A stretch of 64,000 nucleotides of DNA from sequence record NC_061444.1. One strand, given 5' to 3'. This document shows positions 4,613 through 48,690 of the stretch, one piece after another. A model generated the notes under the pieces. The model ran no database searches. It worked only from the letters and a program-made list of their open reading frames with translations, and had not been told where the DNA came from. Each line of letters opens with the position of its first letter. Position 1 is the stretch's first letter. A program made the position numbers and the translations under genes.

Positions 4613-4620
4613 AAATTAGC
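4613..4620 (-). promoter_or_regulatory. Candidate phage promoter motif GCTAATTT
   Basis: Intergenic, 36 nt upstream of ATG 4577; same octamer recurs upstream of other genes. Confidence 0.5.
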
Positions 4621-4641
4621 GAACCACTTGAATATAGGAGG

Positions 4642-5667
4642 TTATTCCTCCAATACTCCGCTAATCTCCGAGAACATATTTTTGTACACTAAGGAACCAT
4701 CCAGCTTGTCCAGTCTATCAACGAGAACATACAGTCTGGGTGACGTGCGAATATTAGTCCACGTCTTCTCATTACGATCAAGTCCACCAAGTGTCGGGAC
4801 AATGACTATGCTGAGATTTTTGTTTGCCCTGACGAAGCCTACGTCGATGTGCTTCCTGTTTATACTCCTGAACAGCCTGTTGATTGCGTCCAAACCTACA
4901 GGCCGATTAAATTCCGTATCACTGACTGTATTGACTAAGCTGATGAGTATCCCTTTGTCCTTACCTTCGATCTCAAACAACGCAGCTTTCAGGTCAGCAA
5001 CCGTCGAAGCAGAGAAGTATGAAACATCGTGGTTATAGTCCTTGAGACAACTGCCGAGCGCACGGGCAGATTCGATATGCGCAGCATTGTCATCTCTAAG
5101 GATATACACAGGAGCGTCTGCTTGGTAAGTCCGAGCAGCCATGAGATTGATAAGATCACAAGAGGGCTTGCCTACTGTGGCTAAGCCCTTATTTGCAATG
5201 AAAAACTTATCTTTGTACACATCGTAAATGTTTGGTGGCATGTACTTCATGTAATCATCGTCCAGACTAAGAATCATTCGAGGCTTAGTTAACTGGACGA
5301 CGAGTTGCATACTGCGAAGTGATGCCCTATATTCCGTATCAGATAAAACTCGACTAATCGGAAGGTATTGTACGACAACGAATCGGTCATCAATCGAATC
5401 GACAACCGAACGTATGAGCGTACTGCCTAGCGAGGGACCGGCAGAGAATTGGGTAACGAGCATCAAGCTATCTTCAACTAAGCCTTTAGACTCTGACAGC
5501 GTGATACCGTTACCCGTTTGCTTTACCGAACGCTCCCACGTTATTGTGGGGTCGTCTCGCTGATCGGCATGTACATCAATTGCGCTACACCAGAGACAGG
5601 CTCCAAGAATGTAAGCAGCAATACGTTGTCTGGATCTGCTTCTGCCGGGTTGACGGTTTCCGGCCAT
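4642..5667 (-). CDS. Exported protein resembling type I periplasmic-binding / ABC substrate-binding-like sensor domains
   Basis: Signal-peptide-like N-terminus (RQRIAAYILGACLWCSAIDVHA); KPRMILSLDDDYMKY and VYILRDD...STVADLKAALFEI resemble ABC_sub_bind-type domains (recognition by eye). Confidence 0.5.
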   Translation of the reverse strand: MAGNRQPGRSRSRQRIAAYILGACLWCSAIDVHADQRDDPTITWERSVKQTGNGITLSESKGLVEDSLMLVTQFSAGPSLGSTLIRSVVDSIDDRFVVVQYLPISRVLSDTEYRASLRSMQLVVQLTKPRMILSLDDDYMKYMPPNIYDVYKDKFFIANKGLATVGKPSCDLINLMAARTYQADAPVYILRDDNAAHIESARALGSCLKDYNHDVSYFSASTVADLKAALFEIEGKDKGILISLVNTVSDTEFNRPVGLDAINRLFRSINRKHIDVGFVRANKNLSIVIVPTLGGLDRNEKTWTNIRTSPRLYVLVDRLDKLDGSLVYKNMFSEISGVLEE

Positions 5668-6365
5668 AGGACTTCTCCTCTCTCGTCAGTGACGTAAGGA
5701 ATGCCTGCCCCTTTGCCCAATCCATGACGCAAAGCCCATACTGTGTCGGCATTCTCTTGCACAAACACAAGCCCTTTAACCGTTGCCTCGCCAGTCGCGT
5801 TTTCCAGTGCAGTGACGCGCGAAGTAAGTAACTGTGCGTCAGACTGAATAGTTCGAATCGCAGCGAGGTTCGAGTTAACGCGCTGGTTCATGTTGTTAAA
5901 CATGGTGAAGAACGAGTTGTTCATCGCCGTGCGAACGCCGTCCGTATAGGACTTAGGAATCAGCTCATCGTTGTCAAACGTTGTCACGCCTGTACGAACG
6001 AGAACTTTACCGGTAAGACGTCCACCACTTGCGCTGATAATCTGAGGCGCTGGCAAATCAGCTTCGTCCCAGACTTGAACAGTGGTCATCACCGTGTTGT
6101 AGTCAGTCTCTTCCTGCCACGTATTTTTGTACGGAGCAGTAGCAGTCTTAGACTTACGGCGCAGAACTTTTTTATAGTTAGCGCTCGTGCCGTCTGCGAT
6201 AATCCAGAGACCGTTCAGTGGAAAGACATGCGTAACAGGTTCGGCGAACGCTAAGATGATCATAACGTCTGCGCTTACCTTGTACACGATATTGTTCGAC
6301 GCTGACAGACCTTGCTGCTGGGCAAGACTAATCAACGTGTCCACGTAGTTAGTCAACTGGCTCAT
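5541..6365 (-). CDS. Virion structural protein with C-terminal W-x-x-x-HGLG domain
   Basis: 274 aa; short coiled coil then VWALRHGLG...EVLWP domain paralogous to 723..1319. Confidence 0.7.
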   Translation of the reverse strand: MSQLTNYVDTLISLAQQQGLSASNNIVYKVSADVMIILAFAEPVTHVFPLNGLWIIADGTSANYKKVLRRKSKTATAPYKNTWQEETDYNTVMTTVQVWDEADLPAPQIISASGGRLTGKVLVRTGVTTFDNDELIPKSYTDGVRTAMNNSFFTMFNNMNQRVNSNLAAIRTIQSDAQLLTSRVTALENATGEATVKGLVFVQENADTVWALRHGLGKGAGIPYVTDERGEVLWPETVNPAEADPDNVLLLTFLEPVSGVAQLMYMPISETTPQ

Positions 6366-23812: not shown

Positions 23813-24235
23813 TTACTGTGCCCTCATTGCAAACGTAATGGATTGTTTGTCTTCGAGCTTAGGACAACGCCATGTGATTACACACACGTAGGTCTGCTCG
23901 TATTGTTCGCTCATGGTACACGCTGTCTGCACACCAGTTACATCTTGCGTCAGACCATTGTATGGGTCTTCGAGTGCGAGGCGCATGTACGTTGCAATCC
24001 AGTCTGCTGTAGTCTGGTCGAACGGTTCAAAGAGATATTGATACACGTCTGCACCGAAGTTCTCACGCCACTTACGGGACTTCTTGCGCGTACCAATTAC
24101 CATCAGAATCTTCTGGACAATGCTGTCCATGTTCTGAACGTTATCGCGGGGTTCGAGTTGAATCCACGCATTGATATCACAATAGATGCGCTCACTAGTG
24201 GGCACGTCTATCAGTCGAACTCCGATTCCTGCCAT
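23813..24235 (-). CDS. Baseplate wedge subunit, gp25-like
   Basis: 140 aa; IVQKILMVIGTRKKSRKWRENFGADVYQYLFEP fits the gp25 signature. Confidence 0.85.
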   Translation of the reverse strand: MAGIGVRLIDVPTSERIYCDINAWIQLEPRDNVQNMDSIVQKILMVIGTRKKSRKWRENFGADVYQYLFEPFDQTTADWIATYMRLALEDPYNGLTQDVTGVQTACTMSEQYEQTYVCVITWRCPKLEDKQSITFAMRAQ

Positions 24236-24525
24236 TAGCCAAATCTCACGTTAGAGCTGCCGTTAGAAGCAGTGTCACCACAACTGTTTGGGTCACCAGC
24301 TCGCTGGGCAGGCTTGCCATTGACACGCACACTGGAGCCTGAGATAGCTGTACCTGTATGAGGTGGCTTCTTCGGTTTCCAATGTGGCTTGTACTTATCG
24401 CCGTTACGAACACTGCCTTTGCCATTCACGAACACGTTAGACGATGCTTGTGCCGGAACAACAGGGAAGTAACCGTTATGTCCAGTAGAAAGGTCAGTGC
24501 CTAGACGAATAGCTTTCTGTCCCAT
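24235..24525 (-). CDS. PAAR spike-tip protein (T4 gp5.4-like)
   Basis: MGQKAIRLGTDLSTGH...VFVNGKGSVRNGD...VRVNGKPAQRAGD; ATG at 24525 with AGAGGAGA RBS. Confidence 0.9.
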   Translation of the reverse strand: MGQKAIRLGTDLSTGHNGYFPVVPAQASSNVFVNGKGSVRNGDKYKPHWKPKKPPHTGTAISGSSVRVNGKPAQRAGDPNSCGDTASNGSSNVRFG

Positions 24526-24575
24526 GATATTCTCCTCTGTTAGGCACAAATTAGCTTGTTATGCAGTAGAAACGA

Positions 24576-24604
24576 AAACGGGCGACCCGAAGGCCACCCG
24601 CTTT
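24576..24604 (-). terminator. Rho-independent terminator of the small structured RNA
   Basis: Minus strand GCGGGTGGCC-TTCG-GGTCGCCCGT-TTTCGTTTCT. Confidence 0.85.
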
Positions 24605-24804
24605 CTATGCTTGGATTTGTGTCGCTTACTCCCTCACACCCGAAGCGAGTGCCCGGTAGCCGAAGCTACTAAGCTGGAGTGACTGACCGAGAGTGAAGCC
24701 GCATCAAACGGCAACTGTAAGTGACTCTCGGAACATGATAGCAAACGACCAAGCATCGCAATTGCTATCAGCGACACGTAGAACAAAATCATGTTTGCTC
24801 CTTG
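24605..24804 (-). ncRNA. Putative compact multi-stem, pseudoknotted RNA of unknown class
   Basis: Three perfect 8-bp stems (GTGTCGCT/AGCGACAC, GATAGCAA/TTGCTATC, CCGAGAGT/ACTCTCGG), a cUUCGg hairpin, an 8-bp loop-to-tail pairing (ATGCTTGG/CCAAGCAT), own promoter and terminator; G.U pairs favour the minus strand. Confidence 0.7.
24634..24792 (-). CDS. Possible 52-aa hydrophobic peptide encoded inside the structured RNA
   Basis: AAGGAG RBS 5 nt before ATG; MILFYVSLIAIAMLGRLLSCSESHLQLPFDAASLSVSHSSLVASATGHSLRV; below the ORF-track length cut-off. Confidence 0.35.
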   Translation of the reverse strand: MILFYVSLIAIAMLGRLLSCSESHLQLPFDAASLSVSHSSLVASATGHSLRV

Positions 24805-24811
24805 TGTCTCT

Positions 24812-24840
24812 ACTGTAAGTAAAACATTTGCAAATGTCGA
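24812..24840 (-). promoter_or_regulatory. Sigma70-like promoter with a 14-bp palindrome across the spacer
   Basis: TCGACA-N17-TACAGT on the minus strand; perfect palindrome ACATTTGCAAATGT at 24824-24837. Confidence 0.55.
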
Positions 24841-24849
24841 TCAAGTTAC

Positions 24850-25810
24850 TTCGAGTTGCCCTTCGCCCAACATCACTAGGGTTTCAACTCTCTTTCTCTC
24901 TTTACCGCCTGGGCTGCGGAAACCGCACACAAGAACAACACATCAAGGACACACGGCGGAAAAGTGAAAAAGTTCCGTATGCCCTAACAGCATCGCTCAA
25001 GCGAAGGAGGTGACCCATCGGTGATCTGCGGTGGTTGATACACTCTTTAACAATCGCTCTTGTTGTGCATTAGATCGTGGTAGGAACGCGATTGACCGCT
25101 AACAAGTCCTATACGATATTTCACTACCCGGAAAAGTGGGCAAGCTATGGCAGCACGTCAACGGCAGCATGGCGCGGACACACTCCATTGAACATTGTTA
25201 AGGGCAATGCTCAACAGGCTGTGTACAGCTTTGACCAAACGCAGAGTCGCTCGTCGCCCAACATCACTTGAGTATCTCGTCTACGTTCTTTTACTCCCTA
25301 GATACCGTGAAAAGGCACGGCACCCATGAGGGTCGCGGATGTTTATCACATTAAGACTCTTACAGTTCAATCCTGTACGCAGTGTGTTGAGTCGTCCGCT
25401 GGATGACACACTACATACCCTCACCGTGTTGTACATCGGTAGGAAAGAGCTGGTGGAATTGTCATGGAGAGTAGATATCTCCCCAATGCACACTGTTATT
25501 GCCAGCCAGTGTGCATCAGGCAGCGTAACTGCGAACTGCTGTCCCTAAAAGAGTGGCCACAACGCTGAGAATACGTTCTACCAGTCTACGTGCCTAGAGG
25601 CTGCTGCCGTGCTATGTCGTAAAGATGAAAAGAACTGGGCCTTGTGGGCGTCAGCGGCAGAGCAACAGTCTATCACGTGGGTGCCGGGGTTGTCCTCACG
25701 ATTACAGAGCATAAGCTCAAACCGGCTGGAGGCTCACATGCCGCCAAGAAATACAGCGCGTGAGTTTATGGACCAGCAAGAGACTGCCCGCGAAGTAAGT
25801 CTCTTGCTAC
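24850..25810 (+). ncRNA. Putative large (~950 nt) structured RNA of unknown class
   Basis: No convincing CDS; more than a dozen hairpins and long-range helices, including 10- and 11-bp perfect stems; G.U pairs mostly favour the plus strand. Confidence 0.55.
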
Positions 25811-25848
25811 AACTTGATATTACTATCTGCAATTTTTATTTACAGATT

Positions 25849-27612
25849 TTAAAACGCTTTACGTTCGATATTCGAATATAAAGTTTCATACGGCTCAGAG
25901 TACAGTTCAGGACCGCGTTGAGCGCGTACAGTCACGTAACCAGTGTGACGGTTGAAGTCAGTGATTTCGACTGTAGGCTGTTTAGGCTTGAGAGTCGCAT
26001 AAATAGGAGCGTTCAGAGTTGGTTCGTCTGTCTGAATCTTATTTACAGATTGCAGAGCAGCGCCTGAAAGCGTAGGCAGCTTGAATCGCAGTTCAGCACG
26101 TTTCTGTCCGAACGCTGCGCGAATCATACCGTTTTCCAGCTTCACACCGTTCTGCTTGAGATATGCAGCGATGCGACGACCGATACCCGTAAGCTGATCG
26201 CGAGTGCGTGGGTCGAACGTACCTTCGAAGCTGATTGCTTCTTCCGGTTGACGTACAGACAGATGCAGACCTGTGTTGAAGTAACCTTCGGTCAGAAGAC
26301 GAAGCACTTCTTTGACAACCTCTTTCGTGTTCTGATTGATAGCAGCAACACGCAGCTCAGGCACGTCTACTTTGATCGGGTCACGCAGTTCGGTCTGGTT
26401 GTCCATGTAGCCGAGTGAAATGTGTTTCGCATTGGCATACGTATGCTGCAACACACCAGTAGCGCGAATCAACACAGAGCCGCCTTTAGCGAGGTCATAC
26501 AGTTCATCGCTGGTGGTTGTGCTGAACAGATAGTAGTCTGTAGGCACTGCCATGCGATTAACAGCTTCAACCGCTTTCGTCTGCGCTTCTTTCACAGTCT
26601 TACCGAAGACAACACGACTACGGTTAGGCTGAGAGGCAGACACAGGGAAGAACGCACCGTAAACAGCCTGCACGTTTTTCTTAATAGGCTGATCAGAAGC
26701 AATCTTCTTACCGCCAGCGAGCGGAGGCAGCTTAACGCCCACCAGCTTACCTTTGACGATATGCTTGTTTTCTTTAACAGGCTTGAGACTGTCGATCAGC
26801 TTAGACAGTGACGCACCATCGAGAATCTTCTCAAGCGGAACAACAAGGTTCTGCGGCAGATAGTGTTTCTTGCGATACGTGTAGATAACGGTGTCTTTCT
26901 TGACCTGCAAAGGCGTAGCCATATTGCGACCAACAACACCGACAGGCTGGAACGTGTTTGCTCTGTCGTTAGCGATTGAGCCAAACTGTTTAGTGAACTC
27001 AGTCTGACCGATGATGTTAGCGACACGCAGATGACCACGAACGATAAACACAATCTTCGGTTCATCTTTCAGGCGCAACTCGTAGCGGTCACGGTTCAGA
27101 TAAACCAGGCTGTACTTGTCGCCCTTCTCCAGCTCAAGGTCATACTCGTCGTTAGCGTCATCGACAACGACTTTCTTACCCTGATACGTAGCGTAAGTGC
27201 GAGCACCGGCAGACTCAGAAGCGATCTGCATTGCCTTACCGGTATTAGATAGCGATGCAGCGAAGTCACGCACGGCTGGCATCAGGTCGAATGAAGACGC
27301 TACAGAATACGGTTCGCGCTTATCGCCAAGATGCAGATGCACGGCGCTTGTGCTGGACATGAAGACTGTTGTACCTACATCTTCGTGCTTACCAGCAAAG
27401 TTCAGGCCGCTGATACGTTCGATGGTATTCGCATTCAGTGATTCGAAGCGTACATCGCTACCAGCAGCGAAGTCAAAGATTTCACCGTGACGCCAAGCAT
27501 AGGCAACGTTGCTGGAGCTAAGGCCAACAAACGCATCGCCAATTCGGCTGACGGTTAACGGCATGATACTCAGATCACGAATGATCGAGGACTGCTTTTT
27601 AATGAGGTTCAT
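25849..27612 (-). CDS. Hypothetical protein, candidate internal head protein (587 aa)
   Basis: Contains the ~65-aa domain shared with three other ORFs (TYATYQGKKV...KGDKYSL), preceded by SES-A. Confidence 0.7.
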   Translation of the reverse strand: MNLIKKQSSIIRDLSIMPLTVSRIGDAFVGLSSSNVAYAWRHGEIFDFAAGSDVRFESLNANTIERISGLNFAGKHEDVGTTVFMSSTSAVHLHLGDKREPYSVASSFDLMPAVRDFAASLSNTGKAMQIASESAGARTYATYQGKKVVVDDANDEYDLELEKGDKYSLVYLNRDRYELRLKDEPKIVFIVRGHLRVANIIGQTEFTKQFGSIANDRANTFQPVGVVGRNMATPLQVKKDTVIYTYRKKHYLPQNLVVPLEKILDGASLSKLIDSLKPVKENKHIVKGKLVGVKLPPLAGGKKIASDQPIKKNVQAVYGAFFPVSASQPNRSRVVFGKTVKEAQTKAVEAVNRMAVPTDYYLFSTTTSDELYDLAKGGSVLIRATGVLQHTYANAKHISLGYMDNQTELRDPIKVDVPELRVAAINQNTKEVVKEVLRLLTEGYFNTGLHLSVRQPEEAISFEGTFDPRTRDQLTGIGRRIAAYLKQNGVKLENGMIRAAFGQKRAELRFKLPTLSGAALQSVNKIQTDEPTLNAPIYATLKPKQPTVEITDFNRHTGYVTVRAQRGPELYSEPYETLYSNIERKAF

Positions 27613-30118: not shown

Positions 30119-30150
30119 CTCCTTATACGATAGTCTCAGCTAAATTAGCG

Positions 30151-43058: not shown

Positions 43059-43114
43059 CGTGAATCTCCATAAGAATGGGCATCGTGTAACGACTGTATG
43101 AAATTAGCGAGAAC

Positions 43115-48612: not shown

Positions 48613-48690
48613 GGTTAAAACCCTCATAGAATTTATAGTCGTTGAATCGACAGGTTGAAATTAACGATTGCAGAAAAAATTCAAGTATTT

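Follow-up and report, generated by a model that had tools for sequence, protein, structure and literature searches.

The window analysed here is a 64,000-nucleotide (nt) stretch of the genome of Erwinia phage pEa_SNUABM_32 (NC_061444, genus Alexandravirus), and adding 62000 to a window coordinate gives the coordinate in that record. Our subject is a 1,323-nt island, adjacent to the tail-spike gene, between two minus-strand coding sequences (CDSs), that of a PAAR protein (24235-24525) and that of gp118 (25849-27612), which carries a KMPT-N domain. In the 49 kilobases (kb) of annotation examined, all genes lie on the minus strand and all other intergenic gaps are 86 nt or shorter, so that this island is the only large one. 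No open reading frame (ORF) of more than 90 amino acids (aa) lies between the two CDSs, both of which are complete and full length relative to their PHROG and Pfam families. An initial annotation, made from the window alone, had read the island as a gene-free, helix-rich locus of two divergent RNAs of undescribed type, in otherwise densely coding DNA. The dense coding around the island and the lack of a long CDS within it held on inspection. As described below, comparison with relatives shows a conserved fold that belongs to the minus strand throughout, and a small ORF of 52 aa, kept across the phage family, inside its 3' part.

Conservation, fold and strand of the island

By blastn, the island was matched in 46 phage records at 71-100% identity, and the gap was retained in all relatives fetched, at lengths of 1,307-1,456 nt. 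Its identity to Alexandra was 72% (PAAR, 76%; gp118, 78%) and to SNUABM_1 91% (PAAR, 86%; gp118, 91%), that is, its DNA is conserved at about the level of the flanking genes. Substitutions in the island showed no 3-nt periodicity, its indel runs were dominated by lengths of 1 and 2 nt, and stop codons numbered 11-32 per frame in all six frames of every relative. No similarity to E. coli genomes was found by blastn of the island.

We searched for known RNA families as well. ARAGORN reported no transfer RNA (tRNA) or transfer-messenger RNA (tmRNA) gene in the whole window, and cmscan of positions 24000-26400 against Rfam, on both strands and at E-values up to 10, returned no family match, its output consisting of five sub-threshold chance matches to microRNA, CyVA-1 and Xist models. 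Thus, no match was obtained by cmscan to GOLLD, ROOL, OLE, HEARO, raiA, RNase P, ribosomal RNA fragments or riboswitch and leader families, in agreement with the initial annotation, which had seen no hallmark of tRNA, tmRNA, RNase P or introns. Group I and group II introns were ruled out by the lack of an Rfam match and by the completeness of both flanking CDSs; a ToxI-like type III toxin-antitoxin locus and a CRISPR-like array were rejected for want of tandem direct repeats, only two trivial low-score repeats being present. Neither Rfam 15 nor literature searches covering these phage genera, large RNAs of phages and type I loci of lytic phages yielded a prior description. Neither the large part of the island nor the peptide part fits a described family.

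Fifteen full-length sequences were folded jointly with RNAalifold. The minus-strand consensus reached -638 kcal/mol with 375 pairs, 119 of them with double compensatory changes, and the plus-strand consensus -520 kcal/mol with 86 compensatory pairs, compared with -394 ± 8 kcal/mol and 25 ± 4 compensatory pairs in column-shuffled alignments (z-scores near -30 for minus and -15 for plus). A gp118 segment of equal length and divergence from the same 13 genomes served as the coding control; it gave -467 kcal/mol with 28 compensatory pairs in sense and 15 in antisense orientation, and the island in these 13 genomes gave -664 kcal/mol with 125. The abundance of helices noticed in the single sequence is therefore far above both chance and the coding control.

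The strand is a different matter. The initial annotation had used wobble-pair polarity to divide the island into a small minus-strand RNA (24570-24804) and a large plus-strand RNA (24850-25810). When only pairs predicted on both strands were counted, so that the count was strand-neutral, G·U cells were minus-type in 176 cases and plus-type in 57 over the island, and 111 against 20 in 24926-25726. In tool-made alignments, G·U cells outnumbered A·C cells by 55 to 7 in the 3' module and by 74 to 7 in the Y-domain (both domains are described below). Furthermore, some G·U pairs, in the Y-domain and in hairpins, are invariant and would become A·C mismatches if read on the plus strand. Folding of the single sequence did not separate the strands (z of -2.2 for minus and -2.5 for plus), so a reader of one sequence could be misled on this point. 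With a supported helix defined as having at least two double-compensatory pairs and at least 85% pairing, and with a span limit of 400 nt, 35 helices comprising 247 base pairs (bp) were supported, 27 of them upstream of 24850 and every one a minus-strand helix. Since covariation and wobble polarity consistently favour the minus strand, we reject a plus-strand transcript for the large part. Note that alignments of the most divergent members (Y3 and L028) are uncertain in places, and that the covariance-model E-values given below are rough.

The ORF-less RNA body (24850-25773, minus strand, like all features described here) holds the 27 upstream helices in multi-branched domains, with no conserved ORF of at least 25 aa on either strand. 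In the direction of the minus strand it comprises a 10-bp hairpin (25733-25764, nine covarying pairs), the multi-branched Y-domain (25543-25681), a conserved hairpin with invariant flanks (25483-25519), a hairpin in which nine of ten pairs covary (25376-25417), domains at 25233-25334 and 25030-25128, and a three-way junction (24904-25022) with double changes in 15 of 34 pairs. The Y-domain, taken as 25540-25685, was 91.8% paired, compared with 30-40% for slid partners, and 25 of its 40 pairs showed double changes; none of 500 shuffles reached these values. Double changes were also found in 15 of the 31 pairs of the middle module.

A 15-nt loop motif, AGUGAUGUUGGGCGA, occurs twice in the body, at 25254-25268 (copy A) and 24863-24877 (copy B), 391 nt apart and nowhere else in the window. 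Each copy is closed by a short covarying stem, which for copy B takes the forms CCCU/AGGG, CCAU/AUGG, CUCA/UGAG and CCUA/UAGG. In addition, the three-way junction carries a single-stranded CCUCCUUCGC (25001-25010), whose CCUCCUU resembles an anti-Shine-Dalgarno (anti-SD) sequence. It is invariant in 16 Alexandravirus-type sequences and in contig L054, is unpaired in the consensus folds, and is lacking in Sasquatchvirus Y3. A role as a cis anti-SD for the peptide described below is no more than a lead, since CCUCCUU does not covary with the Shine-Dalgarno (SD) sequence. L054 also bears a natural deletion of about 230 nt (window 25232-25462) that takes out loop motif copy A; the large RNA is therefore modular. 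L054 itself is JAVWLC010000001.1, a 34.7-kb contig binned in a 'Raoultibacter sp.' metagenome-assembled genome, and is almost certainly a mis-binned phage contig because it contains the Alexandravirus-type start block (see below) and RNA at about 77% identity. The body is followed by a variable, unstructured linker (24809-24849), which has indels and is the least conserved segment. The overlapping divergent signals that had been proposed at 24812-24847 fall in this linker; they come down to a sigma70-like minus-strand site (24840-24812: TCGACA, 17 nt, TACAGT) that occurs at chance frequency and is kept in one clade only.

The 3' module and its small ORF

The island is not gene-free. Inside the supposed small RNA lies an ORF of 52 aa plus stop (24634-24792, start at 24792, coding to 24637), preceded by AAGGAG and 5 nt before its AUG. 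The ORF has stayed open, at 47-64 aa and mostly with an SD, in each of the 17 full-length sequences as well as in Yoloswag and SNUABM_5, and a recognisable homolog of the peptide is encoded in Salmondvirus JA11. It is the sole island ORF of at least 25 aa, on either strand, that is common to more than 9 of the 17 sequences, and small ORFs have been annotated at this place in S17, S2, S35, Yoloswag and SNUABM_5. The first 20 or so residues are hydrophobic (mean hydropathy, 2.08), and the peptide has one hydrophobic segment. Variability at the three codon positions of the N-terminal part was 0.16/0.07/0.20, a coding-type pattern (gp118, 0.09/0.05/0.26), the second positions of the first 20 codons being strongly conserved, which shows constraint at the protein level. 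The larger indels in the ORF, of 15, 15 and 3 nt, are multiples of 3, and helices in the C-terminal half covary, rewriting residues.

Searches of the peptide against Pfam, NCBIfam, PADLOC and PHROG at E-values up to 1 gave only noise and no family. A profile of the peptide retrieved 23 clusters from 5.8 billion proteins, all unnamed, 47-78 aa long and on phage-type contigs. A holin or lysis-timing peptide was considered and rejected: no holin family was matched, and the neighbours are PAAR/baseplate genes and the KMPT-N protein.

Covariation predicts that the message of this peptide is itself folded. An SD/AUG hairpin (24773-24808) pairs the SD AAGGAG (24803-24798) with codons 3-6 and places the AUG in the loop. 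The same architecture, with differing sequence, was found in Alexandra, L054, Y3 and Yoloswag (Alexandravirus, Sasquatchvirus and Yoloswagvirus). In SNUABM_5 (Rivsvirus) the AUG is in the loop and a weak SD is only partly paired, and the hairpin is absent in S3 and the S45 type. Downstream follows a pseudoknotted module (24608-24775) composed of P1, P2 and a three-way P3, in which 96.7% of partners were paired, compared with about 40% for slid partners, and 18 of 42 pairs showed double changes; again, none of 500 shuffles attained the observed values. In the pseudoknot, the loop UGCUUGG (24749-24755, codons 12-14) is complementary to CCAAGCA in the tail directly 5' of the terminator (24608-24614). 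Genomes of the Yoloswag/Rivsvirus type have UGCUCGG in the loop and CCGAGCA or CGAGCG in the tail, a compensatory change that supports the pseudoknot at one position shared by a clade.

Boundaries, distribution and neighbouring features

The 3' boundary is an intrinsic terminator at 24566-24605 including the U-run (hairpin 24605-24574), whose core stem is G+C-rich and 9 bp long (the scan counts 14 pairs) and whose loop is UUCG. It had already been recognised in the initial annotation, and it is conserved with compensatory changes and with the loop variants UUCG and AUUA; the G·U pairs that it contains restrict it to the minus strand. No other intrinsic terminator was found in the island on either strand, and the sole plus-strand promoter-like site (25092-25120) was within chance expectation.

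At the other end, 1 nt past the gp118 stop, lies a 33-nt block (ATCTGTAAA, 12 nt, ATAGTAAT; 25816-25848) that hardly varies among the 17 sequences. Each genome has a single full-length copy, and among IMG/VR, JGI metagenomes and GTDB genomes only this phage lineage contains it. In Yoloswag/Rivsvirus-type relatives it comes after a clear intrinsic terminator of the upstream gene, and second copies sit before the peptide unit in Yoloswag and JA11; these positions fit a promoter or start signal, and we refer to the block as the putative start block. An exact second copy of its core, ATCTGTAAATA, occurs at 26040-26050 (minus), about 190 nt upstream within the gp118 CDS. With an expectation of 0.67 for the 11-mer at up to one mismatch over the whole window, two exact copies within 200 nt are unexpected; the second may be an internal promoter or a coding coincidence. 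A motif with an inverted repeat or shared promoter at 24829 (plus) and 25833 (minus) was also considered, and a pattern search supported no such recurring motif. Just past the block is a stem-loop (25774-25809) that varies in sequence and always folds, and that contains a perfect 11-nt inverted repeat in the window. In Alexandravirus-type relatives it is a single hairpin of -13 to -21 kcal/mol, 9-14 nt past the block; the 5' regions of L054 and Y3 adopt another fold of equal stability. From the terminator, the invariant block and this hairpin we infer a transcript of roughly 1,240 nt on the minus strand, starting at about 25810-25818 and ending at about 24566-24570.

Full-length RNA was found in Alexandravirus, Sasquatchvirus and metagenomic relatives, including Sasquatchvirus Y3 (nhmmer E = 8e-138) and two divergent metagenomic phages. 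The 3' module with the peptide extends to Yoloswagvirus and Rivsvirus, its covariance model matching SNUABM_5, Yoloswag, L055 and L057 at E-values of 1e-8 to 1e-12; Salmondvirus loci have the peptide and weak module matches (E of 0.03-0.05, filters off). An alternative architecture was found in Yoloswag, SNUABM_5, L055-L057 and the JA phages, in which the order is KMPT-N gene, terminator, start block, about 620-1,000 nt without genes, one to seven small ORFs, (second block), peptide module, terminator, (~40-aa ORF) and PAAR. The small ORFs have no assigned function. The gap of about 700 nt in this type is structured (double changes in 28 of 148 pairs among four sequences) and ends in a hairpin that is matched, in syntenic position and at E-values of 4e-4 to 0.04, by the covariance model of the window's 25483-25519 hairpin; in the window, this model scored 2e-17 on the minus and 0.05 on the plus strand. 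The structured gap and the shared hairpin indicate that the large RNA arose, at least in part, before the Alexandravirus/Sasquatchvirus clade. When the middle hairpin was sought with a simple motif, only Y3 was recovered, and the R2 model of the Y-domain detected no homologous domain in Yoloswag, SNUABM_5, the JA phages or fHe-Yen9-02.

Several further observations concern these relatives. In L030, a hairpin in the Yoloswag-type ~700-nt gap occurs twice, at about 5130-5165 and 5400-5430 (A5 columns 357-389 and 655-687), as GACCUAUCUCAG.GGGGAGACGGG; this repetition parallels the twofold loop motif of the window, although the sequence differs. Many relatives have, between the RNA terminator/late promoter and PAAR, an extra segment of about 125 nt with a 39-42-aa ORF, which the window lacks (477-600 in L007-L009, that is, AD1, S33 and S3; 3824-3952 in L055; 3768-3887 in L059; about 6786-6916 in L030). 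The record of Yersinia phage fHe-Yen9-02 (L034) is linearised in the syntenic interval, so that the locus is split across its ends, with the gp118 homolog at 664-2433 and small ORFs at 146-573.

Beyond the terminator, and outside the RNA unit, lies the invariant PAAR leader (24526-24560), with a GCTAATTT motif (24548-24555) and a ribosome-binding site (RBS). On the minus strand, (C/A)GCTAATTT occurs at 4613-4621, 30142-30150, 43101-43109 and 24548-24556, and the variant CGTTAATTT at 48658-48666. The motif sits in short intergenic regions just 5' of RBSs, often directly past a terminator; it is not enriched by raw count and has a strong position bias, and it is probably a late-type promoter of this phage family. 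As for annotated genes, RefSeq gp117, a 47-aa plus-strand ORF (25738-25881) overlapping the gp118 3' end and the invariant start block, is probably spurious, since relatives lack the annotation and share no plus-strand ORF at this place; the plus-strand ORFs annotated over the RNA in S17, S35 and S22 (158 aa) are likewise not conserved. A search of the PDB with gp118 found no sequence relative. Elsewhere in the window, an HNH endonuclease gene is annotated at 5541-6365 (minus), in the middle of the tail-fibre gene cluster, and may be a homing-endonuclease insertion.

Interpretation and relation to known systems

Judging from sequence comparison, we consider it likely that the island encodes, in one minus-strand unit, a large structured phage RNA of a new type and, linked to it, a small-peptide messenger RNA (mRNA) held in a translationally locked state. 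Both parts would most simply form one transcription unit because no terminator separates them in the window. Such a unit, of about 1,240 nt, would begin just past the start block and stop at the terminator hairpin. Its first part would be an ORF-less RNA of about 950 nt exposing the twice-repeated 15-nt loop and CCUCCUU, and its second part, a pseudoknotted 3' module of about 200 nt, would be the mRNA of a 52-residue peptide whose single hydrophobic segment is of membrane type, so that the peptide may act at a membrane. The RNA structure would hold the peptide untranslated, with the SD paired to codons 3-6 and codons 12-14 locked to the 3' tail beside the terminator, and translation would therefore need refolding or processing of the transcript. 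Acting in cis, the upstream RNA could be a very long structured leader governing the timing or the stability of the message; alternatively or in addition, it could act in trans as a protein-binding scaffold.

Several observations weigh against this interpretation. The start site, the single-unit status and translation are predictions. The peptide unit of Yoloswag-like phages carries a start block of its own and is separated from the upstream structured region by protein genes, so that linkage of the two parts in cis is not obligatory. CCUCCUU is kept where AAGGAG has been lost, in S3 and the S45 type, and Y3 shows the reverse; since it is uncoupled from the peptide SD, though able to pair with AAGGAG-type SDs, we treat it as a lead. 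As the natural 230-nt deletion of L054 demonstrates, the large RNA can do without some of its sequence. As for the peptide, its C-terminal 32 codons vary at 0.20/0.25/0.25, without protein-level constraint, and the last codons of the S45 type are in another frame; hence only the N-terminal helix may matter, or the ORF may partly be a by-product of nucleotide conservation.

The most serious competitor, which we regard as possible and hold to be clearly less probable than a single unit, is that the ~950-nt part is an independent, trans-acting ornate RNA (a scaffold, decoy or particle in the manner of GOLLD, ROOL or OLE) that lies by a small-peptide gene; in anatomy this reading coincides in part with the single unit, and the difference is one of function. 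Its 27 supported helices, conserved loops and repeated loop motif go beyond the needs of a leader, the peptide unit of Yoloswag and JA11 stands alone with its own start block, and the small-ORF-type phages also have a structured region past the block, with one hairpin detectably common to them and the window. On the other hand, no terminator precedes the peptide module in the window, ORFs lie directly downstream in the other architecture too, as expected of a leader, no known ornate family was matched, and a portion has been deleted naturally in L054. A tentative extension of this idea, to which we give a similar minority weight, is that the segment represents a new giant ornate RNA class, working in trans while the jumbo phage infects, for instance as a protein scaffold with many sites or as a self-assembling particle, and linked in evolution to the locked membrane micropeptide, in which case the repeated loop and the exposed anti-SD-like CCUCCUU would serve the scaffold or particle. 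Another reading, which we think unlikely, makes the 3' module the toxin component of a type I toxin-antitoxin-like system whose antitoxin is an antisense RNA not yet seen. From established knowledge of hok/sok, the small hydrophobic peptide, sequestered SD, long-range pairing of the 3' end and strong terminator are hok-like, but consensus scans found no terminator on the plus strand and a single promoter-like site there, which is at chance level, the linker is poorly conserved, the peptide has no match to known toxin families, and an addiction module would be of no obvious use to a lytic jumbo phage.

Slightly less probable still is that the whole island is noncoding RNA and the 52-aa ORF a by-product of nucleotide conservation: the C-terminal codons lack a coding signature, their frame varies by clade, and compensatory changes alter residues, whereas the ORF is uninterrupted in each of the 17 full-length sequences and in three further genera, mostly with an SD, its large indels keep the frame, its N-terminal second positions are strongly conserved, and no other island ORF is kept as widely. 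The divergent pair of the initial annotation now appears very improbable. The equal stability of the plus-strand fold in a single sequence and the sigma70-like site in the linker favour it, but the wobble cells, the invariant G·U pairs, the hairpin model scores and the lack of a plus-strand terminator all speak for the minus strand. What survives of that description is an undescribed locus with a large and a small part, conserved, structured and separable in evolution, as the Yoloswag-like phages indicate; its large part is not on the plus strand, and its small part is probably a structured mRNA and not a plain noncoding RNA. Finally, we assign almost no probability to decayed coding sequence or to a DNA-level element such as an origin or packaging site. 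Small ORFs do occupy the syntenic interval of relatives with the other architecture, but the island is conserved like its neighbour genes and shows strand-specific compensatory changes without periodicity, and neither a pseudogene nor a duplex DNA site would keep helices that tolerate G·U on one strand.

Structured RNAs of more than 1 kb other than ribosomal RNAs are rare in bacteria and phages, and the few large ornate RNAs that are known form remarkable assemblies. The 1.24-kb phage transcript proposed here would contain 35 compensatorily supported helices and is conserved like neighbour genes across two genera, and its 3' module extends to three further genera (weakly in Salmondvirus). If the ornate-RNA reading were true, it would be, to our knowledge, the largest structured non-ribosomal RNA family in a phage. 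The locus also reveals a conserved candidate membrane micropeptide that has been left out of most genome annotations, and it offers a tractable case for studying how so large an RNA fold is coupled to a concealed small ORF. More generally, 'gaps' in jumbo phage genomes merit comparative RNA analysis.

Membership of the hok-type mRNAs or of the ornate RNAs is not supported, because model and family matches, antisense signals and tandem repeats are all lacking; the resemblances are nevertheless instructive. Like hok/sok-type mRNAs, the 3' module specifies a hydrophobic peptide of about 50 aa with one helix, has a compact covarying fold, and is predicted to hold its SD in a stem and to pair its early message with the 3' end beside the terminator. 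Unlike them, it has no antisense RNA detectable in consensus promoter and terminator scans and no sequence similarity to known toxin families, it belongs to a lytic jumbo phage, and about 950 nt of structured RNA lie ahead of it. With GOLLD, ROOL and OLE, the large part shares a length in the range of several hundred to more than 1,000 nt, many covarying helices in multi-branched domains, an association with phages, and the lack of a known function at discovery; it differs in giving no covariance-model match, in having no neighbouring tRNAs, and in being continuous with a small-peptide mRNA. The leaders of tisB, zorO and aapA1 offer a third comparison, since here too a same-strand leader precedes an ORF without an intervening terminator, the SD is occluded, and the exposed CCUCCUU could pair with AAGGAG. 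This anti-SD-like element does not covary with the SD, and the leader would be five- to ten-fold longer and far more folded than those of tisB, zorO and aapA1.

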